From Amphiscolops sp. MND2022 (taxonomy: Eukaryota), in NCBI GenBank assembly GCA_964187785.1, contig OZ076418.1:41478001-41542000 (forward strand): a DNA stretch of 64,000 bases, in the 5' to 3' direction. The notes below the pieces were generated by a model that did not search any database, was not told the DNA's origin, and saw only the letters and a list, made by a program, of their open reading frames with translations. The translations under genes were made by a program, and so were the position numbers. Shown here one piece after another: positions 14,567 through 48,211 of this stretch (position 1 is the first letter of the stretch; each line of letters begins with the position of its first letter).

Positions 14567-15689
14567 TTTGTGTGTCAATATTGTGTGTCTGCCGTCTTGA
14601 GTTGAATGAAAAGCGGTGGCCAATTTTCTTTGATTGGGGATCCCACCCGATTTTCTTGTCAGAGCAGAATACCAAAAGAAATGTTCCGTCAATATGCAGG
14701 CAATTTAGCGAAAACTTCCAATTACCAGCAACCGGTTCGAGATACAGACTCCATTTTCTCCTTATTTCTCTGGACTGCAACAACTTGGTAAGTTCAAAAT
14801 TTCTTGTTCAAATATGAATATCTACTTCTCATTTTCAAAACTTCGAAATTTACTTCACAATTGACCGGGAAAGTGAATTCAGTTTTCAATAGGAATTTGA
14901 ACCATTGTTTCAAAATAGTGATAATGTGAGCTGTTTCAGTTAAACCAGCAAAAACTATCTATTGATGAAAAAGATCGACAATCAGTGGGGTGTCTATTCC
15001 AGAACCTTTTTACGAGCAGTCATTGGAATCTGAAGTTGAAACTGTAAAAATGGTAAGTGTTATCAATTTTAATTTTATGTCTCTATTACACTCTATTTAA
15101 CCAGATAACCACCTAACAAACAGATCACTGTCATTTTGTTAGACTTTCAAACCTTTTGTGTTTAGATCGTGTTTTCACATGGCGTGACATCATTCCGAAC
15201 GATGAAAGTGAAACAGTGCAATCAGCAAGTTCGAGTAGTGGTAGTCAACACCCGAATAGTATCATTCCAACACCACAGATGAGTTTAAAATGAATACAGC
15301 TCTATCTAGTAGACTCTCTTCTTTCAACTCAAAACCTTCTTCATAACAATTCAATCCCACACATTCAAACATCAGGAATTTGAAAACTATACTTTTTACG
15401 TTAATTGTGATATCAATATACATTTCACAAAGATAATGAAGAACATACTGCTCGATTAAAAATTTGATGACGCCTCCTTTTTTTTGAAATTTCAGTATCT
15501 CTAACTATTAATTTTGACCAATACAATAGGGAACATTCTACGTCTGATTGGAAAATCGTTGATATATCCGGCTTTTTACCTATGTTTGTGTCTTTATCTC
15601 TCGAAAGTATCAAGATCCATTGCTAGGGAGAACTTGTCTAACGATTGAAAAATTCTTTATATCCGGCAATTTACCAGCATTTGTGCCTT

Positions 15690-22143: not shown

Positions 22144-25100
22144 TCAACTTTTTTCCAGCGCTTCATATATTATCAGAGGGTTATTCGGTCTTGTCCGTTT
22201 CGGGGGAATGTATACTAACTCGCTCTCGGATTCTTCTGATGATATGAACCCTGGATCAACGTCGTCGTCTGAAAAGAGTTCGGAATCAGCATCGCCCTCG
22301 TCTTGCTCATGGCCTAACCGCTCACACGAGTGTTTTGTTACAATGAAATCTCTAGCATTCAACAAAAGACTAGGATCTTCTTTTGTGATTGTGCTTTTAC
22401 TGATAAAATTTGTGCTAGATGCCTTGTAGTGACCAAAAGCCAGCGTTTCATGTCCTTCTGTCATGTACCGTTTATTATCTACACTACTGAGAACGATTTT
22501 GTCACATTCTTCCACAAAGAGCTCCAAGTTATGAGATCTTAAGGTTCGCATTTTCTCTTTGACGGTGAGATTCTCTCGGAGCACTTCTTTGTACAGCTCG
22601 TGGTGTAGAGTTTTCTGTATTGTTTTCGTCACCCCTTTTGCACATTTTTTAATTTTGTTTGACGCTGAGATGCTATACATTTTCGCTTTCAAGCCGACGT
22701 ACTCATCGATCACCACACCATTCATCTCATCCTTCATCTTCAGCACCTTTCTCTTGTTGCTATCGCTGTACAACGGGTGATCTTTTGGGTAGTCCGAAAA
22801 ATCGAACACCTCTTGCATGGATTCAAAATCTTTGTATAAATCTTCAGTTTCAATAGCTAGTAAAAGCGAGTCTGTGTCTGAATACAAAAGTTTTGCCTGA
22901 TCACCATACTTTGGTTTTACTGTTTCATACAAAAACCTATACATGACCAATTTTGATAAGTCCAAAACGGAAGCTCCGATGTAGGTTGGTTTATTCCAAG
23001 TTACTATTGTCTTGCTCATCAACACGGCGCAGAGGTCAGGATGAAATATTTTGAAAGATTTGAAATTCGGTTTGCTGATGTATTTTTGACACTGATCCTC
23101 ATCGGTAAAAAGTTTAATGTTTTGTCGATTCATCAAATCTTCCATTGACTTGCCAAACACCGAGTTATTGAGCAGTTTCCCGAGATCTTTCAAACAATCG
23201 GTTTTGGCTGTACGTCTGATGCTTGTATTGATGTCTATGTAGGTTTTCATCCAGGGGCTCTGTTCAAATTTTATTATTCGGTGAACTTTGGAAATGACAA
23301 GACCATGTCGCACGTAAAATTTCAATATCCTGTAGTGACAGACGTAAAACTGCTTCCCATGGAAGGTTTGTAATAGCTTCATAGTTCTGCCCGAGTCACA
23401 ACTGGTTTCTGATTGCCACATTGATAGCATTTCTTTGGTGATTTCCATGTGATCTGGTGCCAAAGGGTAATCGTTATGTTGATCATGCAGCTCTGATGGG
23501 TATTCTAAGTCTAAAACCACGAAATAACCATGCGGAGAGCTGTCACTGGTCGCCAAAACGTCTTCGATTGATATTTTTACATCTGAGAAATTTCCTGAAG
23601 GTAAGTTTTCACACATAACTCCTCCATATAAATTGTTTGCGTCCAATAGGATTAACCACGTTGTCGGCTTTGTATCCTCATAGTTCTCACATCTTGGGTT
23701 ATTTGCTTGAAAGTAACGACTGTGGTAGACACCACACATGCCACCCCTTATTCCCCTCCTCACGATGTCTAGGTGATCCTTTTCGGCGAGTATATCTAGC
23801 TTCACTTTCGTAGTTTTCAGCATTGCGTTCCATGCGAAATGGGGGGCTGTTAAAAAGTGGGCTGGGTCTAGATTAAAGTGGTGGAAACACAATTTCCGGA
23901 AGTTTTCAAACACATCAGCCAAAGTAGTAACGTCTACTCGTAAATAAATATCGTGATACTCGCCTAGATTATGAATTTGAAGTGCATGCCACACGTCTTT
24001 GGCATGCTGGTAGTCGGATTCAGAGATTCGCTCATTGGTTAGAGTATTTATCCAAATATCCGGTAACTTAGTTTCGCTGAATTTCGTGAAAGAATCCACA
24101 TAACTATATGGATACACACCTTTCTGGAGAATAAGGTTTTCTTGTTCCTTTGTTAGATACGCAAAAATATGGTTAAACGAAGGAAATGGTAAAGAGTCAG
24201 CTTTCATGGTCTCTATGAGGCTGCTCAGAGATTTTGCTTGAAATCGGTAACTGTCAATGAATCGGAGCCTCTCGAATGTAGTTTTCCTTTCGTTGTTTTT
24301 GTTTTGAAATGTTCCCGTGGGTATCGATATTGAGAAGCTGATAAACTCTTCCGAGTTGTTGGCAATACAATCTAGTTTTTCGTCCTCCTCTCCACGTTGA
24401 TAATATCTCAGAATTTGTTTGAAGTCATATTTCGACCCATTATGGAAAACTATCGGGGTGAAATTTGTGGTTCTACATGATGAATTGCAGTTTTTATGGG
24501 CAATACCACGGAATTCTCCATTCAGGTGATTGTGATCAATGACGCGATCTGACTCGAGAACTTCCCCGCAAATTGAGCAATGCGTAGCCTGCTCCAAAAG
24601 TTTTTCATCACCGTAATTTTTTCTATATATGGGGAACTTTCGTTTGCTTTTGTAAATATCCTTGGCCCAGAGGCGCATTGTATCCAGGAATTGATTAATA
24701 CAATTTTCATTTCTGCTGAAAAAAGTTTTGCAGACCTTTCCTTCCCCATTCAGACAAATAGCAAAAATACCACAAGGTATTTGTTTTTCAATTTTCCGAG
24801 TGCTTGCCTTGTTTTGAGGCTCGTTCACTTTGGGGGTTATAGCTTCCATATCTGCATAAATGATAAATGGCACTCGCATGGTAGCGGAGAAATTTTTCCA
24901 AAACATCTGAGTGTTGGATTTCATCTTGATGCGACAGGGTTTTTCTGCACAAATCATTTTGTGATTTTCGAAGGAGTCTTGTCCATAACTACCACATAGA
25001 CATTTGCGACAGTAAAATTGATTCTTCTTTTTTGTTTGTCTTCTCATGAAAGCTTGAAAATTCGTGATGAGACAGTAATGAAACTTACCATCTTCCTCCA

Positions 25101-26130
25101 GCAGTAGAAGATCAATAGGATAATAATCTTTATGAGATATACGGAGGGGGTAAACATCTTTGTCGATAGCAAAAACATTGATTGATAATTTGTTTTCATC
25201 CTCAATTTTTTCAATGTCTTTCAGCTTCACAGGTGTTTCTACCTGAGACATATCAGGACCACTCAATGTTTTGTATACTCCTGGTCGGTTTCGATTTTTG
25301 CTGATCGTCAAATAGTGTTGGGCGGCCTTGATACAGAGTTCGAAACAATTGTTTGATTTCAAAGTTTTTATATTGAGGAGAAAATGGTTGTTGGCGAACT
25401 TTCTTGGAGTTGGAATAAAGGTTCCAACTTTAATTGGTGTATGTTTTGCAAAGTTCAGGCCCAAGTTCAATATTTTTTTCACGGTCCATCCTGATCCATG
25501 CTGGCAAAAGTTTTCGAACTTTTTCAATATCTGATGTTTCAAATCCGTGTAGATCGCAGGTGTAAGGCCATCGCTATAAAGCGTCTGCATTTTTGAAATG
25601 AAACAAGTGTCTATTTCGATTTCCTTAGTGGGCTTGAAAAGTTTTACACAGAGAGAGAGTTGAAATTTAATGCTTGATTGAGTCTGCAAATCAGTCTGTA
25701 CTAATGAAGATATACGTTCAAAATATTGGTCGAGGAAAGTTACTGGGTCTAAAATCAAAGCTTTTGGAGTGATTGATAAAACTTTCAAATAATTTTTTCT
25801 GGTACTTTCCACCAGTCGATAGTCGTCCTCTTCACAGCTTCGAGCCGTTTCGTTGTCTGCTGTCACTCGATGGACCTTTTGATTTTGTTTCACTTCGGTT
25901 TCGTTAACGAACTGCGAATCGCAACTGTTGAAGGAAATGCTCGAACGATGTAAACGTTTCTGATGACGTTTGAGAGCATGTCTTGTTGTGAAAGTTTGAT
26001 TACAAAGATTACAAATATAATTCATAGCTCGAGATGGTCCAATATTGTGTTTTTGTTTCAAATGCTTTGTTAAACTATTCTTCCATTTGTAACTTTTTGG
26101 ACACAGCTCACAATTGAAATTTGAATTCAT
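22144..26130 (-). CDS. polB: Protein-primed family B DNA polymerase, intronless, 1328 aa, N-terminal C2H2 fingers, acidic C-tail
   Basis: IYADMEA, FHNGSKYD, DVTTLADVFE, LDANNLYG, KLLNNSVFGK, YSDTDS, AKGV. OTU-like CFELCIKAA and HYCLI, and an EndoVII-like CSICG...DHNHLNG insert. Confidence 0.96.
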   Translation of the reverse strand: MNSNFNCELCPKSYKWKNSLTKHLKQKHNIGPSRAMNYICNLCNQTFTTRHALKRHQKRLHRSSISFNSCDSQFVNETEVKQNQKVHRVTADNETARSCEEDDYRLVESTRKNYLKVLSITPKALILDPVTFLDQYFERISSLVQTDLQTQSSIKFQLSLCVKLFKPTKEIEIDTCFISKMQTLYSDGLTPAIYTDLKHQILKKFENFCQHGSGWTVKKILNLGLNFAKHTPIKVGTFIPTPRKFANNHFLLNIKTLKSNNCFELCIKAAQHYLTISKNRNRPGVYKTLSGPDMSQVETPVKLKDIEKIEDENKLSINVFAIDKDVYPLRISHKDYYPIDLLLLEEDGKFHYCLITNFQAFMRRQTKKKNQFYCRKCLCGSYGQDSFENHKMICAEKPCRIKMKSNTQMFWKNFSATMRVPFIIYADMEAITPKVNEPQNKASTRKIEKQIPCGIFAICLNGEGKVCKTFFSRNENCINQFLDTMRLWAKDIYKSKRKFPIYRKNYGDEKLLEQATHCSICGEVLESDRVIDHNHLNGEFRGIAHKNCNSSCRTTNFTPIVFHNGSKYDFKQILRYYQRGEEDEKLDCIANNSEEFISFSISIPTGTFQNKNNERKTTFERLRFIDSYRFQAKSLSSLIETMKADSLPFPSFNHIFAYLTKEQENLILQKGVYPYSYVDSFTKFSETKLPDIWINTLTNERISESDYQHAKDVWHALQIHNLGEYHDIYLRVDVTTLADVFENFRKLCFHHFNLDPAHFLTAPHFAWNAMLKTTKVKLDILAEKDHLDIVRRGIRGGMCGVYHSRYFQANNPRCENYEDTKPTTWLILLDANNLYGGVMCENLPSGNFSDVKISIEDVLATSDSSPHGYFVVLDLEYPSELHDQHNDYPLAPDHMEITKEMLSMWQSETSCDSGRTMKLLQTFHGKQFYVCHYRILKFYVRHGLVISKVHRIIKFEQSPWMKTYIDINTSIRRTAKTDCLKDLGKLLNNSVFGKSMEDLMNRQNIKLFTDEDQCQKYISKPNFKSFKIFHPDLCAVLMSKTIVTWNKPTYIGASVLDLSKLVMYRFLYETVKPKYGDQAKLLYSDTDSLLLAIETEDLYKDFESMQEVFDFSDYPKDHPLYSDSNKRKVLKMKDEMNGVVIDEYVGLKAKMYSISASNKIKKCAKGVTKTIQKTLHHELYKEVLRENLTVKEKMRTLRSHNLELFVEECDKIVLSSVDNKRYMTEGHETLAFGHYKASSTNFISKSTITKEDPSLLLNARDFIVTKHSCERLGHEQDEGDADSELFSDDDVDPGFISSEESESELVYIPPKRTRPNNPLIIYEALEKS

Positions 26131-29494: not shown

Positions 29495-32400
29495 TCATGT
29501 AGCAGTAATCACATCAAGCTTTTCTTTGGAATGAACTCTCTCATGTCGCTTCAAATAATCCAATCGAGTGAACTTGGCATCACAGTAGCTGCAATCGACA
29601 GACTTGTCATTTACGTAATACGCTTTCACACATTAGCCCTACTGTATTTTACAGAAATGACATCCATTCGAGCAGGGTTCGGAAAAAAATTTTGAAAAAA
29701 AATGTGTTTAAAACGTTTAAAACATTGAAATTTTCTGTTTAAAACATGTTCAAAACTCTAGATCTATCACAAATTTGTCTAACACTAAACGACCTAAAAA
29801 TTGAGTTCCCTACAGGATGCGAATACAGAAAGCAAGTTCGTTGGCTTTCTCAATTTAGAGTCGATTCGGTGTTTGATTGTGGACGAAGCCCAGGGTGCTG
29901 AAAATTGGTTCCAAGCCTGCCGAACTTCGAATAAAAACCAGAAGCGCATCGGCAATTTTCTTGATGTATTCCGCCAAATTACCCAAGATTACTTGTAATT
30001 TTAGGAACTTGAAAATATCTATAACTGAAATAAAAACAATTGAACAAAATGAAAGTTTTTGTCATGTTTAAAACTGTTTAAAACATGTTTAAATCGCGTT
30101 TAAAACACGGCATGTTTTAAACATGCGAATCCTGCACACGAGTAATGGTAGCTGAATTCATCGAAAAAGTACCAACTGCTTAGGACATTTGTGTGATCGT
30201 CACTTGAAAAGTTAGAGCTTTGTACAAACCGGTATTTTATCACTGCTGATTTTCAATCGTTTAAAAAAACTTGCATAGAATATTGACATTTCAATTCGTG
30301 CATGCAATGAGTCATAGTCAATAAATTGTCACTGACCACCAATGATCCAGAATAAACGTAGTTTTTTGATTTTATAAGAACAGCATAATTAACGTTCATA
30401 CCTGAGAAGTGTACTTTTTTGACAAATGCATCAAAATGACAAGCCTGCAAGCATAAGGCTTCTCTCCTGTATGAATTCGCTCGTGTCTCTTCAAATGTGG
30501 TAACTGTGGAAACTTGGCGTCACAGTAGCTGCAAGCATAAGGCTTTTCTCCTGTATGAATTCGCTCATGAGTCTTCAAATCTGTCGGTTGAGTAAACTTG
30601 GCATCACAGTAGCTGCAAGCATAAGGCTTTTCTCCTGTATGAATTCGCTCGTGTCTCTTCAAATCTGTCGGTTGAGTAAACTTGGCATCACAGTAGCTGC
30701 AAGCATAAGGCTTCTCTCCTGTATGAATTCGCTCGTGTCTCTTCAAATTTGTCAATTTGGTAAACTTGGCATCACAGTCGCTGCAAGCATAAGGCTTTTC
30801 TCCTGTATGAATTCGCTCATGAGTCTTCAAATTTGCCGGTTGAGTAAACTTGGCATCACAGTAGCTGCAAGCATAAGGCTTTTCTCCAGTGTGAATACGT
30901 TCATGCCTCACCAAATCACGCTTCACAGCGAATTTAGCATCACAGAAACTACAGACAAACTTTCTCTCACGTCCGTTCTTCTCATTCACACTTTTCCCCA
31001 CTGTTATTCGCACTTTCTTCGCGGCATTACTCGATTTCTGTTCTTTCAGCTTCCTAGTGCTTCTTGCAGGTATCTTGATTGCATACCTGAATGAAGCCCA
31101 GATTTTATACAACTTTCCCTTAATTTGGCCCATCGACTGATTGCATTAGCGGTTCAGTATGACGGTATATCGAATAAATTCTTCCTTCGACATTTTATTT
31201 CAACATTACTAAGCTCTTTGGGTCCCCCTAATTTTCATACAAGATAAATGCAATTTTATTTTTCTAGAAAGCATTTCCCTATACGAGGATTTTTTGCCAT
31301 AAATAGGTTGACGTTAAATTCCAGCTTGTCGATATAATCAGTGTAACACACTAAGGTACAATAAGCTGAAGACACATGATTTCGCTAACGAATAAATTTT
31401 TACATATTCAGTTGAAGCAAAAATCTCATTCAGTTGAAGCAAAAATCTCCGTAGAAAGATTTTGATCAGAATTACAGAGCATTGTTTGAAATCAAACAAA
31501 AAAAACAATCTATAACAGCTTATTTTTGAAAAACTTTCAACCTTCGGCTCAGATCTCTATATTTAGACTTTTTTCTGAAAACGCCATCCTAATGAATGTT
31601 GCACCGCGAAATCATTACGAAATGCCAACTCCAGTTTTTACTCCGTTGAAAAATGTTTTGAAAAAATTGCAGTTTTTACTGTTGATTTTTCAAGAAAGCA
31701 TTTTCAAAATAAGTGTTAACCTTAACTGGACGAGGAAATTTCCGGATCCATCCAAAAATCTGCTGCTTCAACTTTAAACCGCAATATCTCCAAATCTATT
31801 CAAGTCCCGACAAACGGTTTATAGAGCGTTCGAAAGAGGACTTTCGAATAAATTTTTTAAACTGCTGTACTGGCTCCGAACTTTGCACGCCTCGTGCCTC
31901 TGACTACATTTCAGCGTGTTTGAAAACAGGCTAGAGCCATTTTGACCCAATCTTGATACCAGTGGGATAATGTTGCCACAAACGAAAACTTGAACAAGAC
32001 GGGAACGTCTAAAGTCGGCGCTATATCTAAGGCTCAAAAAGCGCAGAGTTTTCTAAATATGCCCAGGATGTATTCATGAAAAGCTTTGAAAACACTTTCG
32101 AGACACCCAAAGTGTGCCTTTCATGCTCGATATGACTGGAAAATCAGTTTTCCCGACTGGAAACAAAAAAATTTCGAAAACGTCGCATAGTGCCGAAAAA
32201 TGAAAAGGGGGGACCCTTTGGGATTCATTAACATACTTTTTGTTGCAAAATATCAAAAAATCCGAAGGGGGGACTCTTTTGAGACATCAAAAATTTTCGA
32301 GAAAAAAAATTCGCACAGTGCCGAAAAAAAAATTGAAAGGGGGGCCCTTTGGAGTCTTCCGGTTTTGTTGGTTACGTAAAAAAGGTAAAATACGAAAGGG

Positions 32401-35400
32401 GGACCCTTTGCAGTAAGTTTGCATTGGTCGAACTTGGCCTGAGTGAACTTATCAGTTTCTGTAAAAAGTGGTACATACGCGATGAGCTCTGTGGTCTGAC
32501 GAAAAAAAAAAGAAAAAAAAACTAGCCACTGTAATAGTCGGGCTTTTTTCCTTAAAGGAAAAGGCGCCGACTAAAAACGGAAATACTGCGCTCTATTTGT
32601 TGGTCCCGTTTTCTCAGTTTCGGAGACATCAAGTCAATATTCGGTAAAAAGGCGAGCAATGCTATGTAAAATTGTCTGAAAATCTTATTCACTAGTTTTC
32701 ATTACCATACGGTCAACTGGGGCCTTCAGAATATTGCAGAAAATAACTGCTACGAAATCGTACCGTCGTCCATTTAGGGTTAAATATGAAAGTTGAAGAA
32801 CGTTTCCAGGGTTACAAAAATGATCCAGGGAGGTTTCTTCCCGACCAGTAGTTTTTGAGATATTGCGATAATGAAATTCCAAAATACGTGATACAAATTT
32901 TAAAAATTTGATTCGACTTCAGAACAAAAACTACTGCTATAATTCTGATCAACGTTTCTGTAAATCGAAGACTTTTTTGTAAAATGAATTTAAAAGATAT
33001 TGTACTCTAAAAAGTTTCGTGAGCCATATCGAGTGTCTTCGGCTTTTTGGTATCCGAGTGTACTTAGAAATCGGTGCCATGATGTTAGATGTTGCAGAAT
33101 TGTTCATCAACAAAAAGTGAATAGTTTAATATATCGAATTGAAAACTTGCAAATTTGATCGGGTGTTCATCACATGCAAACTTGAACACCATAGGTTCAT
33201 TTAATGGAGTGAATTATTGCCCAAACAAATTTTAGCGTGTCGACGAAGATGAAAGCATGAAATAACTGTTTTCGTTCGAAGTTATAAATTAACAAAAACA
33301 TTTTGACTAGTTGTCTACTGATGAGCAATATTAATCAGCTGGATGAAAAAATTCACACATGAGCGTCGTAAATATGGATTTAATCGCCTAAAATACCCGA
33401 TCAACATTGCCTTCACAAAATGCATTCGCCCCACGGAAATAGTTATTCTCGCAAGAGCAAATTAAATACAAACCAGGAACGGCTCAAGTCGGGGTCCCAT
33501 TAGAGTGCACAGGCAAGCCTAATTTGCTCAAAGCGCAACATAGTGCTTTCAATATCTCGGATTCCACGACCATACCTTTAACCGTGCAAAATTGGCAAAT
33601 TAAGTCATTTGTCCCGGATTCCACGGATTTAGTCGTGGATTCCAGTAACAAATGCTTAGCTGTACGAACTGTCGGCCCGCTCAAGGTTGCATCAAATTTC
33701 TGTGCCAAAAATACCCCAAAGGTATCAATAAAATTTGAAAACCGCTTTTCCCTCACTCGGAACATCAAAAAAACCCTTTTCAGAAAAAAAATCAGAAGCA
33801 TTTTCTTTATGCCGAAAAACTCACAAGGAGACACTTCAAATCCGCAAAACGCTTTTTCCAAGAATTTTTCAAAAAATAGAAGTGAGTACCCTCTGACCAA
33901 AAAAAATTTTTTCGAAGTCTCAGTGCCGTAAAACTTTAAGGTCCCTCAATGCTCGGAAAACCCTTTGCTACATACGTCTTTCTTCTACCTCTGCAAACAT
34001 AAAATTAAGTTAACCGCTAGACCAAAAGCCCATATAAAAAACCCAATAAAGATTCTCGCACCGCCGACTAAAAAACCCATTTTTATGTATGCTCTAATCA
34101 AGTCTACTTATGAGTGAGGGGTAAAATGACGAAGAGCGATACAAAATCTTGACCTCATTCGATCACGTTCCTTGCATTTGCTGTGTTTCGGACATAAACA
34201 GTATAGCCAAGGTACCACAGCGCCTCTCTCGCTTTCGTGACTAATCTTGCCTCTACAGTTGCGGTAATGTTTAAACATGAAAGGCCGGCAAGAATAGAAC
34301 ACATTGCATTTGAAACACTTATACGCGTCTAATCGTTCTTCTTCCGGGTCACCCTCTTCGCCGTCATCGAAACATCCCAAAAGATCCGCATAATCGTCTC
34401 CGTACCAAATCAACAACTCGAATCCAGGTTTGACGTCTCTCCATGTCACGTAGAAAACTTCCTTATTGATTCTAACAGCTCGTAAATTAGTCCGACTATG
34501 GGCGTCGCCATTGTTAACATAGCGCATCCAGTTTGATCGTTTTTCGTTGCGCGCGTCTATGAAAAGTCCTTCGCCGACATCCCAAGCGTAATCTCCGTCT
34601 CTTGATTCGGGGCTCAAGTCAACATCAGTTCGAAAAACGCCTTCATAGGGTCCAAACATGGTTCCTTTTTTGATTAGACAGTTAGTGTAAACGCCCAGTC
34701 CTGCACCTTTAATTCCACTCCGGCAAACTGCTACCTCTTTCGGACAAGTCAGTTTTGCTCTATCAGTTATACCCATTTCAACCTAAGAAGCTTCACGCTA
34801 AGAATCCGCCCAACCGGTCCTCAAACTAGAGGCAAAATGACTAAAATCCAATCGCAAGCAAAAAAATTGTACTGAAAAGAGCTCTAAACGCTTGGAAATT
34901 CACATCACTAACAACTATTCATCAATTTTGGTAATGAGTTTTATCTATCAACCATATTTTGGAACTCCTGAATTTTCAATTGTTCAAAGTAGAAATGTTG
35001 GAATTTTCAAAAAGGCATTTGAAAGCTAGGCATAGAAATACCTTTCCTAGTTAAGACTACCGATTATTTTGAATTTAAGTATTTGACCAAGTTTTTGTTC
35101 TGAGATTTCCTTTTTTTAAACTTTGTAATATTTTTCTTCCGTGAATATCAGTTGAAAACTGATGAATCAAGCACTGGTTATGGTAAAACAGCGATTAATC
35201 AGTTGACTTTTTATCATGACTATCATGATGTCAAATCATTTAAACAATTTTTCGAATAGTACGATTCCGCCCAAATATTGGCGGGCAGATTTCCAGCACG
35301 ATCGCAACCTCTTTGTCTTTAATCTTGACAATCTCTGGTTTGTGACTTCCACATTTACTGTCCATTGTGAAATCATCACACTCGAGGCAATAAGTAGTTT

Positions 35401-37315
35401 CAACATAACGTTTCTTCTCTTTAACCGGTTCCTCGACGAACTCTTCGAAAAAAGAATAAGGCAGGGCATATTCTCTACATTTCCTCATTGGTCGCTTACT
35501 GGGCTTACTAGGAGTTGTAGGGGTTACTTTTACAGTTGGCGGCTTTTCAGACGGGATGTTAGCTATCCGGACAACTGGTTTCGTTTGAGTGTTACCGCTT
35601 TGTTGTTGTTGTTCACAAGGCAGTGGGGCGCTGTCCCTTTAAATCAATGCATTAAAATAATTTCAACCTTCCGAGAATAGATGGAAGCTCTCTTAGTTGA
35701 ACATTTGATAGATTAACATTATAATAAAATAGACAGAAAAGAAGAATGACTTCGCTTGAAAAATCAAATCAGTCCATATAATAGCAAAAAAATGCAACCT
35801 TGAAAAATTAGTGTGAAATTATCTTTTTGAGTGCATAGCGATTCCAGTATATTCATCTTGCGCTCACTTAGTGCGAAGGACCCATTAGAGAGTTTGGGTA
35901 TCGTTCAGCTGCCATCCTTGGGTTTTTCACCGTTCTATGGATTAATTTTTTCACTGTTTCCTGATCTTCGATCAAGTCCTATGGCCTTATGCTGCCACTT
36001 TGGGCAGAAACTGAACAGCTTGAAAAATAGACGGTTTTGTCAAACGTGAAGCAGAAAAATTCAAGAATAACATAACACTCATTTGTTCCGATTTTTTAAA
36101 GAAATAAATTTACTGCTATCAGTTTGCAGTAATTTTTCCGTGAAGATTGCCTTTTTTGCGTTTAGAAATCACGATGAGGCCTTAGAGAATAGAATGTAAA
36201 ATCATAATGGTATTCTTTTCTTCGCAGCGAATAAATTGACTTCCGGTTGCTTAGGAAAGGAGTCTTTGATAGTTTCAAGCGTCGTTTCGGATCCCCTTTG
36301 AAATCGGCACTCACTTAGGCAACTGTTGATGTATTATTTATTCGTAATATTCTGAAATTAGTCCTCCACTTACCGAGGTTTTCAAATTTATTTTCATGGG
36401 ACCGTTACTGACACTGCAAGGAGGCTCTGCAGTTGGAGCGTATCAACACCTTCCTCACCTTTTTGACAAGGCCCCACTGTAATCTGGGCCATACATACGC
36501 AGACCATTACCTTTTTGGTTTCGATGCGCACGGTCCTCTCAATATATTTTCAAAAAAGTAGAGAAAGGAAGAAAAAAATATTCTGAAGAAATCAATGATA
36601 GCAAGGAACACAAACGAGTGACGAAAAATTAACCTTTATAGTCGCGTTTTTCTTACAAACTTCGTTATGATTTAGATTGACACGCTGGAGAAATGAAGAT
36701 TTTGGAAAATGTGAAATAGAAAATGGCACAAAATTCACTTCAATTTGAAGCTTTTGCGCGAGTTTTGGTGTTTTTGTCGGCTATGCTCGAACCATGTATA
36801 GTTGCTTTTTTACGTTTTTTGTCACAAATTTTGATGGATTTTCAAAATTTTCTAGGCTTCTCAGGTTTAAAAAAGTTGAAACATCTTTAAAAGGACATTC
36901 AAAACGAATATTACTGGGGCAATGACGTTTTTCGTGCCTCAACAATCTCAGCAGGACGTTGCTTAACTTCCTCTGTTTTGGGGCATTCTTTCGATGCTTT
37001 TTCTACAGGATCAAAGATCAGACATGCCAAATCTCCAGCAGGTTTATTGAATTCTTCGACATCAAGCAGCAGATCATAGAACAATGTGATTTGGTTACAA
37101 AGTCTTTGTTTCGCCAGTTTGCATGAAAACGATTTCTCTTCATATTTCGAGCCAAAAAAATGTTTCAAATAATTATCGAGATCTTCTTCAGCGGGGTTGA
37201 AAGACTCGACACTAGAACCAATGTCTTCAGACGGTGGAAGCTTGATTAAAATCTTGACTGATTGAGCTTTCACTTCAATGAAGTTCTCCTTATAAGCGTA
37301 AGTGCATGGAGCCAT
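29495..37315 (-). CDS. PRDM9: PRDM9/PRDM7-like histone methyltransferase with zinc-finger array; 5 exons (37315-36915, 35636-35309, 34782-34154, 31086-30445, 29588-29495), ~697 aa
   Basis: Zinc knuckle YCLECDDFTMDSKCGSH; PR/SET with GAGLGV, FGPYEG, SNWMRYVN, VFYVT, LLIWYGDDY; post-SET C2HC finger; 7 tandem C2H2 fingers. All four splice junctions are phase-compatible (total 2094 nt). Confidence 0.78.
29673..30134. mobile_element. hAT-like MITE in the last PRDM9-like intron
   Basis: Termini CAGGGTTCG / CGAATCCTG, imperfect 8-bp TSD (CATTCGAG vs CACACGAG), and internal TTTAAAACATG repeats. Confidence 0.5.
30445..30960 (-). repeat. 84-bp minisatellite-like C2H2 zinc-finger array
   Basis: Near-identical HTGEKPYACSYCDAKF units at the DNA level; variation is concentrated in the recognition helix. 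Confidence 0.95.
31993..32574 (+). mobile_element. Helentron/HINE-like dispersed repeat, copy 3 (PRDM9-like intron 3)
   Basis: Same 5' end as 7810. 3' hairpin AGTCGGGCTTTTTTCCTTAAAGGAAAAGGCGCCGACT. Confidence 0.55.
33471..34072 (+). mobile_element. Diverged member of the same dispersed-repeat family
   Basis: AAACCAGGAACGGCTCAAGTCGGGG 5' end, CCGCCGACTAAAA 3' end, and shared internal GTGCCG/GAAAAACTC motifs. Confidence 0.4.
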
Positions 37316-41100: not shown

Positions 41101-43809
41101 ACGCTAGAAATTGGAAAATTTTGAAAATTTTAACATTTTTGGTTATTCGGGGGTCCTTGGGGCAATCACAAAGTCCAAAAATCTCTACAAATACACATCA
41201 CACGGAGCCAAATTTATGTGAGTTGAATTCTATGGCTGACATCCTTGAATTTGAATATAAATTCAGTGCTTGGCAAATTTTGTAAAATTTGATTTGAATA
41301 TTTTCCTTTACGATATGGAATATGGGCGGAAAATAAAAATCCCACTATAGTCGCTAAGGAATGTTTATGTGACAGATCATCCCCAAAGACTCCAATAAAA
41401 GAATAGGATAAAACTCCCAAAAAAGACTCCATTCCATCTATCATGTCTTAATGTCAAAAAATACAACAAACTGAAATGTTGGAACGTTTTTAAAACACCT
41501 GGATGTAGCCCGCACGTAGCGTCGTGGATATCAGTTCGCGTTGCAGAAACTCTTTTGCAAAACAGAATCTTTGCAGCAAAAAACCACAGCCTAAAAATTT
41601 TAACGAATCGAGAATTGCACAAAACTGGTGCAAGATCTACAAATCAGCTTTTGACTCTGTTCGAATGAAAAACGATTTTGTCATACCAACCAAAGAATTA
41701 TCACAAAATATTTCTGCAGTTTTTCGACTAAGGTAGCTACAAAATGAAACAAAACTTCGCAAAAAATGAAGCAAGACTTTTTTGGCTGGGATCATTTCCA
41801 AAAAAAAAAGAAAATACTTTCGAAAAACATCAAAAATAGATACCTTTGCCAATTTGGGACTATCATTTGTGAATTTGAGGTGAAATTCGTGTAAAACCAA
41901 CGTGAAACTTTTTAATGGTTATAAGCGTTATTTTTATACGCCCGTAACAAACCAACTAATCATTGTTGTTGGGGATTTTCGGCAGCGCCGAAGGGATTCT
42001 TTCCCACTATTGAAATTATGACTGGTGAAATTAGCCAAAAACAGCACCTAGTTTTTACCTTAAATGGTTTGTCGAAGAAATCTCCGAAATGACTGCAATG
42101 GACATCACTCGCCTGTTAAAAACAAGTTCGAGATCTCTGTTTGAGGTCGACATTTGATGACGAAGTCTAGATCAAACCTGCTCGAGCTGTGATTTATTCC
42201 AGAAATTTGACCCTGATAAGTTTTTAAGTAGAAACTATGTGTAACTGGTGTCCCCACAACAAGTAATTCTCGTTTGTCTTCCAGTTGTGGGAATGTTTCC
42301 ACTATACGATCCCAAATTTTAACAGAAAACTTGTCCTTCAAAGCTTCGTATTTATCATCTTGTTTTCTTTCAGGACAGTCATCCCAAAGTCGAAACCATC
42401 GATAGGGCACAAAAGTTACTGCTATACAAGTGGCAGGAACATCCTGATGAATGAAACTGTAATTCGGGTCCTTTGCACAGGGAAAGGTTACATAAAGAAT
42501 AGGAACTCCAAAGTTTTCAATAGCTGTGAAAGGATCCGGTTCCGAAACCCACTTCGTGAACAACTCGCTGTAATCAAGACCATCGTACAACCAGGTGTTT
42601 CTCGCAGGAAGTTTCAGATTTGCCTTAGTATCTGATAAACCAATGAAAACATTGAAAAAACTTATACCGGGTTCACTTCTGTTCAACAGCCAATTAGCTT
42701 CCGGGCAATATTGGTCTACAATGTGCCTTGGAATCAAGTTTCGGTAAGTGTTAAAAAGGCCAACTCCAGAGATAACAGTATCAGCCAGAAATTGAATAGA
42801 AGCACTTGGACCACATCTGACAAGAACACCATATGCTTGCATTTTGTTATTATTCAGTCTTCGAATCAAAATTTCATTAGCACAGGCTTTGGTGTAGAAA
42901 TTGCCGCCATTCTTCAAGATCGTTTTGTTCAAGTAATACGCTATGGATGATGGTCCGTTAACAGGGTAGTAAGTTCCACTAGAGATCAATCGACCCAAAG
43001 TTGACGCCACTGCAAAAACTGGGCATCTATTGGGCGGTGTTGCTATATAACCCCAAGAAGAAAGAAAACAGGCTCGAAGTTCTTCATTTTCGGTTATTTC
43101 TTCCACCAGATCTACAGCTGGTTTTGTTAAAAAATCAGTCCACCGACGAAAATACTTCAAACGGGACACTTTTTTCAACACAGTAGCTAACCAGCGCGGT
43201 GATAACTTCAACAAGGTAAGAAACACATTCAAACTCAAACACTTCTTGATGATTGTAATGAATTCATCAATTGCCACTTCTTCATCTGGAAAATTTCGCA
43301 GCATCATCGCTTTCCATCCCTCAAAGGTACTTTCCATAATGATTTTCATTTCATTCTTTTTCTTTCCGCCCTTCCTGAGAACGATCTCATCGAACTGATC
43401 GTCTAATTTACGCCAGCACAACTGTCCTTCACATAATTGTTCCAAAAGCTTGAAATTCATACTTTCAGCATCGAGTTCCGAAGCAAAATGGAACCCAGTG
43501 TCGAACTCGAAGTTGCCTTCTTTGAAAGTATGACAACCTCCGCCTAACTTGGCATGTTGCTCCAACACCAACACTTTTTTCCCTATAGAAAGTAGCTTTT
43601 ACGGAAAAGTAGAATTGTCAACGGAAAAGCAAGCAAATTCCGAATGAACCTGATTTTGCCAAAATAGCACTGGCAATGAGTGACGAGACACCACTACCAA
43701 TACAAATGACATCATAGCTGCGACAGAAGTCTGATTCCAACTCTGATGGTTCTAAGTGGTTCCTCAAGACTTTTCTCCGACTTCTCGGGACACGCGAAGG
43801 AGTGGCCAT
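38148..43809 (-). CDS. RETSAT: RETSAT-like oxidoreductase copy B; exons 43809-43650, 43582-42113, 38269-38148; 583 aa
   Basis: Rossmann GSGVSSL and FDTGFH motifs. Exon 2 ends NLFLT-G at a GC donor (G|GCGAGT). The exon at 38269 supplies GQDIWFCGNSPAMNSGLMTASSILKRSL..., the RETSAT-type C-terminus, in the correct phase. Confidence 0.85.
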
Positions 43810-46800
43810 TTCAATGACAGCATTTTCGTTGAAGGGGTTATTGCGAGCATTCCGCCGAAGCCGCCAAAAAATGTACAATGAAATTGTCGTAGCACTCGTT
43901 ACTAGTACAACAGCTCAAACTAAAAATAATGATGTTGGTTATCATTCTGTATACTCAAACTTAACGGACGTCTTTTCTCACGGCAGAAAAAGACCGATTT
44001 CACATCGAAATCACTTTCAACCATTTGTTTTTCCAAAATCAATAAAATTATACTTGTAACGGATTGTTCATTATACCGTGGAAACATTTCATAAACAGAA
44101 TATTTCCTTGTTTAATCTTCTGAGATGATCATTATTCTAGTGCCATTTTGGTCATCATCTTAGGAGATATTGCACCCACACCTGTGGTCTGCAATCGAGG
44201 GGAAACATTTAAAATACAAAACAAAAATTTAATACACACACCATAGCAAATCGCAAAAAGATTCGTAACTACCCCCATTGAAGTTAAGTTATCTACTGAA
44301 TTCGACAAGAGGAAAGTTATGACTAACGCAAGACTGCTAAAAGGATCCAACTTGTTTGTTAAACCCAAACTCCTATGTTGAAATTTTTCCGAAATTCCAG
44401 TCGGAGTCATTCTGAACTTTTGAACACATAAAATCTCTCGGGAATTGGACAGAATTGCATGAACAACTAATTTGAAAATTTTTGACTTTTCGACATCCTC
44501 TCGATCAATTTGAAGCATTTTTCGATGATGAGTTGTATTTGTCTTCTGACAAAACCCTACTGGACAACGAACTCTTCCCTTGTTTCGCAGTTTCCACATT
44601 CTGGTCCATCGAGTCTATCGATAATTCGAAAAAATCGAATAAAATAGTGAATAGGAAACCTCGGAATTTTTATATTTTCGGTGTCAATTTGAGACAATTT
44701 TCATTCAAGAAACTGCATTTATCTCTCCACCAAGCCTACCGGGCAACAAATTTATCCCTTGTTGATCTTTTCTTGATTTGGCAGAATTTGAAAAAACGCA
44801 TCACAGATCATGATTTTCATCCCCCAAATTAATTTGTGGGGTCGTAAAATAATAAAAAACGAGTTCTTGTCTTGTTTACCGTTTTATTCTAACTCAAGAA
44901 GTCTTTCGAAAATTTGACAAAAATTGCAAGAAATTGTAAAAAACCAATATTTTGATATTTTTGTTCATTTCGGTCTCAATGTGAGGCATTTTTCGTACAA
45001 TAACCCGCCTTTTTACTACGAAGACGCCTCCTGGACAACGAATTCTTTCTTTGTTGAACGTTTTCAACATACTTAGCCATCAAGTCTATCGAAAATTTGA
45101 TAGAAATTGCTCAAAAACGCTAGAAATTGGAAAATTTTAACATTTTTGGTTATTCGGGGGTCCTTGGGGCAATCACAAAGTCCAAAAATCTCTACAAATA
45201 CATATCACACGGAGCCAAATTTATGTGAGTTGAATTCTATGGCTGACATCCTTGAATTTGAATATAAATTCAGTGCTTGGCAAATTTTGTAAAATTTGAT
45301 TTGAATATTTTCCTTTACGATATGGAATATGGGCGGAAAATAAAAATCCCACTATAGTCGCTAAGGAATGTTTATGTGACAGATCATCCCCAAAGACTCC
45401 AATAAAAGAATAGGATAAAACTCCCAAAAAAGACTCCATTCCATCTATCATGTCTTAATGTCAAAAAATACAACAAACTGAAATGTTGGAACGTTTTTAA
45501 AACACCTGGATGTAGCCCGCACGTAGCGTCGTGGATATCAGTTCGCGTTGCAGAAACTCTTTTGCAAAACAGAATCTTTGCAGCAAAAAACCACAGCCTA
45601 AAAATTTTAACGAATCGAGAATTGCACAAAACTGGTGCAAGATCTACAAATCAGCTTTTGACTCTGTTCGAATGAAAAACGATTTTGTCATACCAACCAA
45701 AGAATTATCACAAAATATTTCTGCAGTTTTTCGACTAAGGTAACTACAAAATGAAACAAAACTTCGCAAAAAATGAAGCAAGACTTTTTTGGCTGGGATC
45801 ATTTCCAAAAAAAAGAGAAAATACTTTCGAAAAACATCAAAAATAGATACCTTTGCCAATTTGGGACTATCATTTGTGAATTTGAGGTGAAATTCGTGTA
45901 AAACCAACGTGAAACTTTTCAATGGTTATAAACGTTATTTTTATACGCCCGTAACAAACCAACTAATCATTGTTGTTGGGGATTTTCGGCAGCGCCGAAG
46001 GGATTCTTTCCCACTATTGAAATTATGACTGGTGAAATTAGCCAAAAACAGCACCTAGTTTTTACCTTACATGGTTTATCGAAGAAATCTCCGAAATAAC
46101 TGCAATGGACATCACTCGCCTGTTAAAAACAAGTTCGAGATCTCTGTTTGAGGTCGGCATTTGATGACAAAGTCTAGATCAAACCTGCTCGAGCTGTGAT
46201 TTATTCCAGAAATTTGACCCTGATAAGTCTTCAAGTAGAAACTATGTGTAACTGGTGTCCCCACAACAAGTAATTCTCGTTTGTCTTTCAGTTGTGGAAA
46301 TGTTTCCACTATACGATCCCAAATTTTAGCAGCAAACTTGTCCTTCAAAGCTTCGTATTTATCATCTTGTTTTCTTTCAGGACAGTCATCCCAAAGTCGA
46401 AACCATCGATAAGGCACAAAAGTTATTGCTATACAAGTGGCAGGAACATCCTGATGAATGAAACTGTAATTCGGGTCCTTTGCACAGGGAAAGGTTACAT
46501 AAAGAATAGGAACTCCAAAGTTTTCAATAGCTGTGAAAGGATCCGGTTCCGAAACCCACTTCGTGAACAACTCGCTGTAATCAAGACCATCGTACAACCA
46601 GGTGTTTCTCGCAGGAAGTTTCAGATTTGCCTTAGTATCTGATAAACCAATGAAAACATTGAAAAAACTTATACCGGGTTCACTTCTGTTCAACAGCCAA
46701 TTAGCTTCCGGACAATATTGGTCTACAATGTGCCTTGGAATCAAGTTTCGGTAAGTGTTAAAAAGGCCAACTCCAGAGATAACAGTATCAGCCATAAATT

Positions 46801-48211
46801 GAATAGAAGCACTTGGACCACATCTGACAAGAACACCATATGCTTGCATTTTGTTATTATCCAGTCTTCGAATCAAAATTTCATTAGCACAGGCTTTGGT
46901 GTAGAAATTGCCGCCATTCTTCAAGATCGTTTTGTTCAAGTAATAAGCTATGGATGATGGTCCGTTAACAGGGTAGTAAGTTCCACTAGAGATCAATCGA
47001 CCCAAAGTTGACGCCACTGCAAAAACTGGGCATCTATTGGGCGGTGTTGCTATATAGCCCCAAGAAGAAAGAAAACAGGCTCGAAGTTCTTCATTTTCAG
47101 TTATTTCTTCCACCAGATCTACAGCTGGTTTTGTTAAAAAATCAGTCCACCGACGAAAATACTTCAAACGGGATACTTTTTTCAACACAGTAGCTAACCA
47201 GCGCGGTGATAACTTCAACAAGGTAAGAAACACATTCAAACTCAAACACTTCTTGATGATTGTAATGAATTCATCAATTGCCACTTCTTCATCTGGAAAA
47301 GTTCGCAGCATCGTCTCTTTCCATCCCTCAAAGGTACTTTCCATGATGATTTTCATTTCATTCTTTTTCTTTCCGTCCTTCCTGAGAACGATCTCATCGA
47401 ACTGATCGTCTAATTTACGCCAGCACAACTGTCCTTCACATAATTGTTCCAAAAGCTTGAAATTCATACTTCCAGCATCGAGTTCCGAAGCAAAGTGGAA
47501 CCCAGTGTCGAACTCGAAGTTGCCTTCTTTGAATGTATGACAACCTCCGCCTAATTTGGCATGTTGCTCCAACACCAACACTTTTTTCCCTATAGAAAGT
47601 AGCTTTTACGGAAAAGTAGAATTGTCAACGGAAAAGCAAGCAAATTCCGAATGAACCTGATTTTGCCAAAATAGCACTGGCAATGAGTGACGAGACACCA
47701 CTACCAATACAAATGACATCATAGCTGCGACAGAAGTCTGATTCCAACTCTGATGGTTCTAAGTGGTTCCTCAAGACTTTTCTCCGACTTCTCGGGACAC
47801 GCGAAGGAGTGGCCATTTCAATAACAGCATTTTCGTTGAAGGGGTTATTGCGAGCATTCCGCCGAAGCCGCCAAAAGATGTACAATGAAACTGTCGTAGC
47901 ACTCGTTACTAGTACAACAGCCCAAACTAAAAATAATGATGATGGTTATCATTCCGTATACTCAAACTTAACGGACGTCTTTTCTCACGGTAGAAAAAGA
48001 CCTATTTCACATCGAAATCACTTTCAACCATTTGTTTTTCCAATATCAATATCAATAAAAATACACTTGTAACGGATTGTTCTTTATACCGTGGAAACAT
48101 TTCATAAACAGAATATCTCCTTGTTTAATCTTCTGAGATGATCATTATTCTAGTGCCATTTTGGTCATTATCTTAGGAGATATTGCATTTGTGGTCTGCA
48201 ATCGAGGGGAA
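40359..48211. repeat. Recent ~4.0-kb tandem segmental duplication (40359-44204 vs 44375-48211)
   Basis: Offset 4016, then 4007 after a 9-bp indel. Near-identical sequence including introns. Confidence 0.95.
46120..47816 (-). CDS. RETSAT: RETSAT-like copy C, exons 1-2 (47816-47657, 47589-46120); no terminal exon of its own
   Basis: Intact duplicate of copy B exons 1-2 with a few amino-acid changes and the same GC donor at 46119. Confidence 0.8.

Follow-up and report, generated by a model that had tools for sequence, protein, structure and literature searches.

Does Amphiscolops sp. MND2022 possess a gene that marks chromatin in the manner of PRDM9, the protein that places the hotspots of meiotic recombination in mammals, and might that gene place recombination too? 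The question is raised by a locus within 64,000 nucleotides of eukaryotic DNA (hereafter the window; C10:41478001-41542000 of a 1.07-Gb assembly, contig OZ076418.1, with a G+C content of about 37%), for which a preliminary description had proposed an apparently full-length PRDM9-like gene with a concertedly evolving finger array. Whether PRDM9-directed recombination predates the vertebrates is an open matter, addressed by surveys in cnidarians, molluscs, annelids, and termites, and the locus adds a seemingly poorly sampled lineage, the closest relatives of the gene being found in unannotated assemblies. The window is found to hold a single intact five-exon gene of the PRDM9 family, encoding 697 amino acids, whose product most likely marks germ-line chromatin at sequence-defined sites as PRDM9 does; a role in recombination is plausible.

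The gene runs on the minus strand from an ATG at 37315, with an in-frame stop immediately upstream, to a stop codon at 29495-29497. Five open pieces of this strand can be joined in phase into 2094 nt (697 codons and the stop codon) with zero internal stops, the splice sites being set by frame logic and comparison with relatives. The predicted protein begins with a conserved N-terminal domain, continues with a zinc knuckle, a PR/SET domain, and a post-SET finger, and ends in seven C2H2 fingers, and the PRDM9 order of knuckle, PR/SET, post-SET finger, and tandem array put forward at 29495-37315 in the preliminary description is thus recovered. Three further sequences serve for comparison, namely L002 (a 37.6-kb ENA contig, SET 77% protein-identical), L003 (a 1.3-kb NCBI fragment, 67%), and L052 (ENA contig ERZ25074608:ctg185919), the last being a second, independent assembly of the same species. 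The knuckle, SET, and N-terminal parts are contiguous in L002 (L002:9397-10720), where introns 1 and 2 of the window are absent, and L003 carries the post-SET finger and the leader YRIKIPAK in one open frame, a leader with which the finger exon of the window and that of L002 also open. Because these parts are contiguous in L002 and L003, the SET domain and the array would form one transcription unit and, as far as comparison can tell, belong to one gene and not to two, which to that extent answers the refutation by separate transcripts named in the preliminary description. Each of the SET and N-terminal exons is single-copy, and the gene is, by these searches, the genome's only intact member of the PRDM9 family.

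The positions of the introns differ among the window species, L002, and L003, which suggests rapid intron gain or loss in this lineage. L003 (1-1289) has no SET-to-finger intron but has introns before the knuckle and inside the SET domain after NWMR. In the window, intron 1 occupies 36914-35637, intron 2 (35308-34783) is bounded by the direct repeat AGGTTG, and intron 3 holds hugely abundant repeats at 31600-32800 and 33400-33800, where the summed contig depth reaches about 30,000 times the unique depth.

Membership of the PRDM9 family was examined from several sides. The open reading frame (ORF) at 34108-34776 matches the Pfam families PRDM2_PR (1.5e-29) and SET (8.8e-13), and a search of solved structures with the SET exon returned three PRDM9 entries at the top (87.9, 84.9, and 82.3 bits), 19 bits above PRDM12 (69.0 bits) as the best structure outside PRDM9, followed by PRDM5, 1, 2, 11, MECOM, 14, 4, 10, and 16. 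Only the match to human PRDM9 (4ijd) extends to the post-SET finger (query 3-172), where CfkC...H aligns with its PRDM9 counterpart. The motifs FGPYEG, VFYVT, and LIWYG, in which the preliminary description had recognised the three catalytic tyrosines, align residue for residue with FGPYEG, IFYRT, and LVWYG of human PRDM9 (Y276, Y341, and Y357); the tyrosines are identical in the phmmer alignments to 4ijd and 4c1q, and the intervals of 65 and 16 residues between them were checked against the aligned human sequence, so that the SET domain looks catalytically competent. Upstream, the zinc knuckle YCLECDDFTMDSKCGSH of exon 2 scores 10.6 bits against a profile built from 131 PRDM9-like proteins, a score reached by none of 500 shuffles and the best six-frame match of the window to this profile, and a knuckle directly upstream of PR/SET together with a zinc finger directly downstream is among the criteria for the PRDM9 orthology group.

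An exhaustive protein search gave 521 proteins below 1e-10, and among the named matches and tree neighbours are proteins called PRDM9 or PRDM9-like from Priapulus, Apostichopus, Chionoecetes, Nematostella, Mobula, and catfishes. The SET phylogeny, one of the checks suggested at the outset, was estimated from 156 SET domains in a quick maximum-likelihood analysis, was rooted on the genome's only other PR-domain match, and contained no curated members of other PRDM subfamilies; in it, the window gene and L002 form a long branch nested among KRAB-bearing PRDM9s, inside a node with a Shimodaira-Hasegawa-like approximate likelihood-ratio (SH-aLRT) support of 96 that comprises 141 rows, 41 of them KRAB-bearing PRDM9s. 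More KRAB-bearing rows, including the Nematostella PRDM9-like protein, fall outside this node. A protein-language-model search (ESM Atlas) placed the SET exon nearest to a cluster of PR/SET with SSXRD (score 0.96). Since the structure matches, the named hits, the tree position, and the ESM Atlas cluster agree, the gene is assigned to the PRDM9 family. The other PR-domain match used as the root, C3:38708363-38708626 (L035), is a PR exon of divergent sequence, followed at a distance of about 1.4 kb by finger matches, and the PRDM repertoire of the genome appears small.

The second hallmark is the finger array. Exon 4 yields Pfam matches to zf-C2H2 and zf-H2C2_2, and at 30445-30917 Tandem Repeats Finder detects 5.6 tandem copies of an 84-bp unit with 89% matches. 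The helices of fingers 1 to 7 (F1-F7) read VKRDLVR, QPANLKT, KLTNLKR, QPTDLKR, QPTDLKT, QLPHLKR, and RLDYLKR; the six helices listed in the preliminary description are exactly those of fingers 2 to 7, finger 1 having been left out. Its statement that the 84-bp units are nearly identical save in the helix agrees with the nucleotide identity of F2-F6, which is 95% outside the helix codons against 76% inside. Among F2-F6, 7 of the 28 positions vary, including all four contact positions (-1, 2, 3, and 6; hypergeometric P = 0.0017), and the proportion of amino-acid diversity (PoD) located at these four positions is 0.64 for F2-F6 (79% with +1 added) and 0.43 over all seven fingers. The proportions of nonsynonymous (pN) and synonymous (pS) differences in F2-F6 are 0.294 and 0.284 at the contact codons, against 0.016 and 0.186 at other codons outside the helix. 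Ranked among the 18 poly-finger arrays scored in the genome, this array comes first, with a unit identity of 0.884 (at most 0.735 in the other 17) and a contact share of 0.48 (0.18-0.26 in the other 17). By these measures, the array behaves as a coding minisatellite with homogenised units, whose variation is placed almost only at the DNA-contact residues.

Comparison with the relatives bears on the turnover of this array. The array of L002 comprises at least 86 units over 7.25 kb, running off the contig (L002:11537-18790), and is built of few types (QQCHLIN, QECHLIN, and VRCNLIS). Unit identity is 91% within the window array and 96% within L002 but 68% between the two species, whereas finger 1, outside the array, stays orthologous; judged from these identities, the array has been replaced between species, and the concerted evolution that had been claimed for it is supported. 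With about three helix types, a higher-order repeat of about 26 units, and units without both histidines, the L002 array looks like a coding minisatellite that is becoming a satellite. Within the species, L052 differs from the window over 20.7 kb by two single-nucleotide polymorphisms (SNPs), a 1-nt indel, and a single additional 84-bp unit, a second QPTDLKR finger that brings the number of fingers to eight; in the coding parts, neither SNPs nor lesions separate the two assemblies. The extra finger fits minisatellite instability and gives a hint of length polymorphism. Contigs of the DNA runs make repeat depth visible but revealed neither splice junctions nor alleles within the array, which short-read contigs cannot resolve.

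A mechanism can be proposed on this basis. The PR/SET domain, with the whole catalytic signature of PRDM9, would most likely methylate histone H3 (at K4 and K36), and the C2H2 array, of seven fingers or of eight in the second assembly, would direct the protein to a DNA motif. Homogenisation within species, replacement between them, and variation almost only at the DNA-contact residues would be the pattern expected under continual renewal of binding specificity. Expressed in the germ line, the protein would mark chromatin at sequence-defined sites and possibly place meiotic breaks. ZCWPW1 and ZCWPW2 are readers of the histone marks of PRDM9 in vertebrates, and a candidate reader of the same architecture may exist in this genome: at C1:57562981-57563710 (L037:855-1677, minus strand), an exon matching zf-CW (35.2 bits) and one matching PWWP (29.9 bits) share a strand and are separated by about 420 bp, although sequence alone does not separate this pair from the domains of MORC3 or NSD2. 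Coupling to the break machinery, if any, would run through a diverged or different N-terminal module, because the N-terminal part is not recognisable as KRAB or SSXRD.

Several observations weigh against this proposal, and the N-terminal part supplies the first of them. The SET domain and the array bear all the hallmarks of hotspot specification, yet the KRAB and SSXRD modules that work on vertebrates regards as indispensable are not recognisable. By definition, a full-length PRDM9 has KRAB, SSXRD, PR/SET, and fingers; KRAB and SSXRD also count among the features of functional, hotspot-specifying PRDM9 in Baker 2017 and in 10.64898/2026.09.07.749791, and Baker 2017 (PMC5519329), as relayed in 10.64898/2026.09.07.749791, holds that vertebrate PRDM9 forms without KRAB/SSXRD do not direct recombination. 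The N-terminal exon has no Pfam match to KRAB, does worse than shuffled sequence (500 shuffles) when scored with a profile built from 44 homologues that carry KRAB, and gives P = 0.65 (column shuffles) in an hhalign comparison with that profile; six-frame scans of the window and of L002 gave no KRAB match, and no significant KRAB was found anywhere in the genome. The same profile does detect KRAB in the decapod, sea-cucumber, and Nematostella homologues among the protein matches. As for SSXRD, the motif RPMRKCRE..ALPYS..EE is kept in the window, L002, and L003 at the expected place, but an hhalign comparison of the three-species motif with the SSXRD profile scored below column shuffles, and only the knuckle half of an SSXRD and knuckle profile aligns; with its similar basic-aromatic-acidic make-up and its right place, the motif is possibly homologous to SSXRD. 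By Pfam, custom profiles set against shuffles, and hhalign alike, neither module is detectable, and the term full-length used in the preliminary description cannot be upheld.

What stands in the place of these modules is nevertheless under constraint. Residues 1-110 share 74% protein identity with L002 (pN 0.157, pS 0.893, saturated), and the SET domain shares 77% (pN 0.122, pS 0.698); pN/pS is about 0.18 on both, which points to purifying selection, with the synonymous sites saturated. On this comparison, the N-terminal domain is constrained as strongly as the SET domain, and it is lineage-specific, for no homologue was found in Pfam, in the ESM Atlas, or by homology search, and its own genome returned itself only. 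The alignment of the two sequences yielded no usable AlphaFold model (mean predicted local distance difference test score, pLDDT, of 38). It is possible that the domain is a KRAB diverged beyond recognition.

The last finger provides a further objection. Finger 7 is interrupted after the PYAC codons by 856 bp (30444-29589), a separation that the preliminary description did not mention. A direct repeat, TTGCAG, lies on either side of the insert (GCTTGCAG / GATTGCAG), which ends in 14-nt terminal inverted repeats (29599-29612 / 30434-30447) and is shared by the second assembly. If 30445 is joined to 29588, finger 7 becomes a complete C2H2 finger and the frame stays open as far as the stop codon, but only GC-AG excision achieves this; with the insert retained, or with the GT at 30401 used, the protein would end after six fingers. 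The rescue of finger 7 would therefore need a weak GC donor, and splicing of this last intron is predicted from the frame. The inner part of the insert (about 470 bp, 29669-30144) has at least 40 copies in the genome at 83-92% identity, whereas the outer arms are unique, and the contig depth, which over 29600-30199 is 100-150 times that of unique sequence, agrees with this. As only the inner part is repeated, the idea that the whole 856 bp is a complete repeated transposon was rejected. The nested repeat is rich in TGTTTAAAACATG palindromes and includes an 11-bp tandem, CATGTTTAAAA, at 30063-30107.

The remaining objections are of several kinds. At the contact codons, pN/pS is about 1 and not above it, a value taken from only five to seven fingers. 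The L002 copy has GTG at the start position, two one-base frameshifts, fingers that have lost zinc ligands, and in-frame TAA codons at 15095 and 17285 within a duplicated block, so that the gene may be dispensable or decaying in that lineage; PRDM9 often decays and has been lost repeatedly. Array polymorphism, which had been suggested as a check, has the one extra 84-bp unit in its favour, but this variant could be an assembly difference. Two run searches for the organism, in which RNA runs were sought, returned only DNA runs of one sample. A search for the TEX15 family found none, but control genomes also gave none, so this result is uninformative.

How far these objections favour another account of the gene can now be considered. 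The strongest competitor, though an unlikely one, is a PRDM9-derived, sequence-specific chromatin regulator that no longer places recombination, or never did, aimed for example at transposable elements, with an array that changes rapidly in an arms race, and akin to the truncated 'SZ' (SET and finger) paralogues of PRDM9 in fish and cnidarians. The undetectable KRAB and SSXRD, the contact-site pN/pS near 1, and a genome that is repeat-rich even inside the gene speak for such a regulator, as does the seven-finger PoD of 0.43, which overlaps the upper range of truncated forms (10.64898/2026.09.07.749791). Truncated forms usually have slow, heterogeneous arrays, however, and the present array is the most homogenised and contact-focused of the 18; all the catalytic tyrosines are in place, the N-terminal domain has been kept under strong conservation and not lost, and the genome has a candidate ZCWPW-like reader gene. 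A distinct account, held with comparable doubt, would have the KRAB/SSXRD module replaced, or diverged beyond recognition, into a constrained lineage-specific domain while the contact-diversifying, length-polymorphic minisatellite array was retained. If this were true, either hotspot specification of the PRDM9 style, with its Red-Queen dynamics in which binding specificity is renewed continually while the target sites erode, would operate through a non-KRAB adaptor, or the signature would stem from a different selective pressure.

That the gene is itself decaying, the insertion in its last finger truncating the protein and the locus heading to loss, is improbable. The split of finger 7 by an insert with a nested repeat, the finger being lost if the insert is retained or the canonical GT is used, and the several disabling lesions of L002 would be in keeping with decay, but the other exons are all open with GT-AG borders and matching phases, six fingers are intact even unspliced, the coding parts are free of SNPs and lesions between the two assemblies, and finger 7 keeps its zinc ligands and open frame despite an insert old enough to have taken in a nested element with copies that differ by 8-17%. 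Least probable is membership of another PRDM subfamily, the resemblance to PRDM9 being a mere convergence in domain order. Some tree neighbours are automatically named PRDM16-like or PRDM1-like, the branch of the window gene is long (0.79) with weakly supported nodes nearby, and the tree holds no reference sequences of other PRDM subfamilies; set against this are the 19-bit margin over PRDM12 and the reach of the 4ijd match among the solved structures, the presence of the zinc knuckle, and the KRAB-bearing PRDM9s that lie on both sides of the tree position. A PRDM9-like gene that marks germ-line chromatin at sequence-defined sites accordingly remains the preferred reading. Its parts are given in Table 1.

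Table 1. Parts of the predicted PRDM9-family gene, in order of translation (positions in the window).
Feature	Position	Strand	Content and borders
Exon 1	36915..37315	-	Start codon and conserved N-terminal domain of about 100 amino acids; donor CA|GTAATA set by frame logic
Exon 2	35309..35636	-	Low-complexity linker, motif RPMRKCREYALPYSFFEEF, zinc knuckle; acceptor AAAG|G, donor GAG|GTTGCG
Exon 3	34154..34782	-	PR/SET and post-SET zinc finger; acceptor CTTAG|GTTG, donor TGAG|GTCAAG
Exon 4	30445..31086	-	Leader (YAIKIPARS...), finger 1, tandem 84-bp F2-F6, two codons and two further bases at the start of finger 7; acceptor TTCAG|G
Intervening sequence within finger 7	29589..30444	-	856 bp; putative GC-AG intron
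Exon 5	29495..29588	-	Rest of finger 7 (SYCDAKFTRLDYLKRHERVHSKEKLDVITAT) and stop codon

An Rfam scan of the window gave no match. Downstream of the gene by 3.4 kb, an ORF of 1328 amino acids on the minus strand (22144-26130) encodes one C2H2 finger as well as an endonuclease VII domain and is probably part of a mobile element. The possibility that the gene itself belongs to a mobile SET-finger-recombinase element was considered and rejected, the gene being single-copy with constrained orthologues and no adjoining recombinase. Two RETSAT-like ORFs of 489 amino acids each are present at 42105-43574 and 46112-47581; the closest library protein to the first is 98% identical over 487 amino acids and comes from the same contig, being probably the second ORF, and among named homologues the best is that of the acoel Symsagittifera roscoffensis (42% identity).

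Compared with known systems, the gene is of a kind already familiar in invertebrates. Concerted evolution of PRDM9 fingers has been reported in mammals, Nematostella, Lottia, and Capitella (PMC2779102), so that invertebrate cases have been known since 2009, and PRDM9 has also been described in termites (10.1101/2024.03.22.586269) and in 28 cnidarians (10.64898/2026.09.07.749791). The window gene shares with vertebrate PRDM9 (human/mouse, 4IJD/4C1Q) the zinc knuckle, the PR/SET domain with the equivalents of Y276, Y341, and Y357, the post-SET finger, and a 3' array of concertedly evolving 84-bp C2H2 units that vary at -1, 2, 3, and 6; unlike it, the window gene has an unrelated-looking conserved N-terminal domain instead of a recognisable KRAB/SSXRD, and only seven or eight fingers, the last of which lies 856 bp from the array. 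With the invertebrate orthologues, it has in common concerted fingers, contact-residue diversity (PoD of 0.43-0.64, within the full-length range of 0.29-1.0), and perhaps the co-occurrence of a ZCWPW-like gene, although the full-length invertebrate forms are reported with the KRAB and SSXRD for which both tests fail here. Were the gene to prove meiotic, it would test how essential these two modules are. Truncated paralogues ('SZ', 'XSZ', and teleost PRDM9-beta) are likewise composed of SET and fingers with KRAB/SSXRD undetectable, but generally have a low PoD and slowly evolving fingers (10.64898/2026.09.07.749791), whereas the array of the window gene is homogenised and contact-focused, its N-terminal domain is still under constraint, and it is the sole copy in its genome. 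The new aspects are the variant N-terminus and the split last finger. In addition, the dynamics of a coding minisatellite can be followed here in compact form, with seven against perhaps eight fingers within one species and 86 or more units in a relative.

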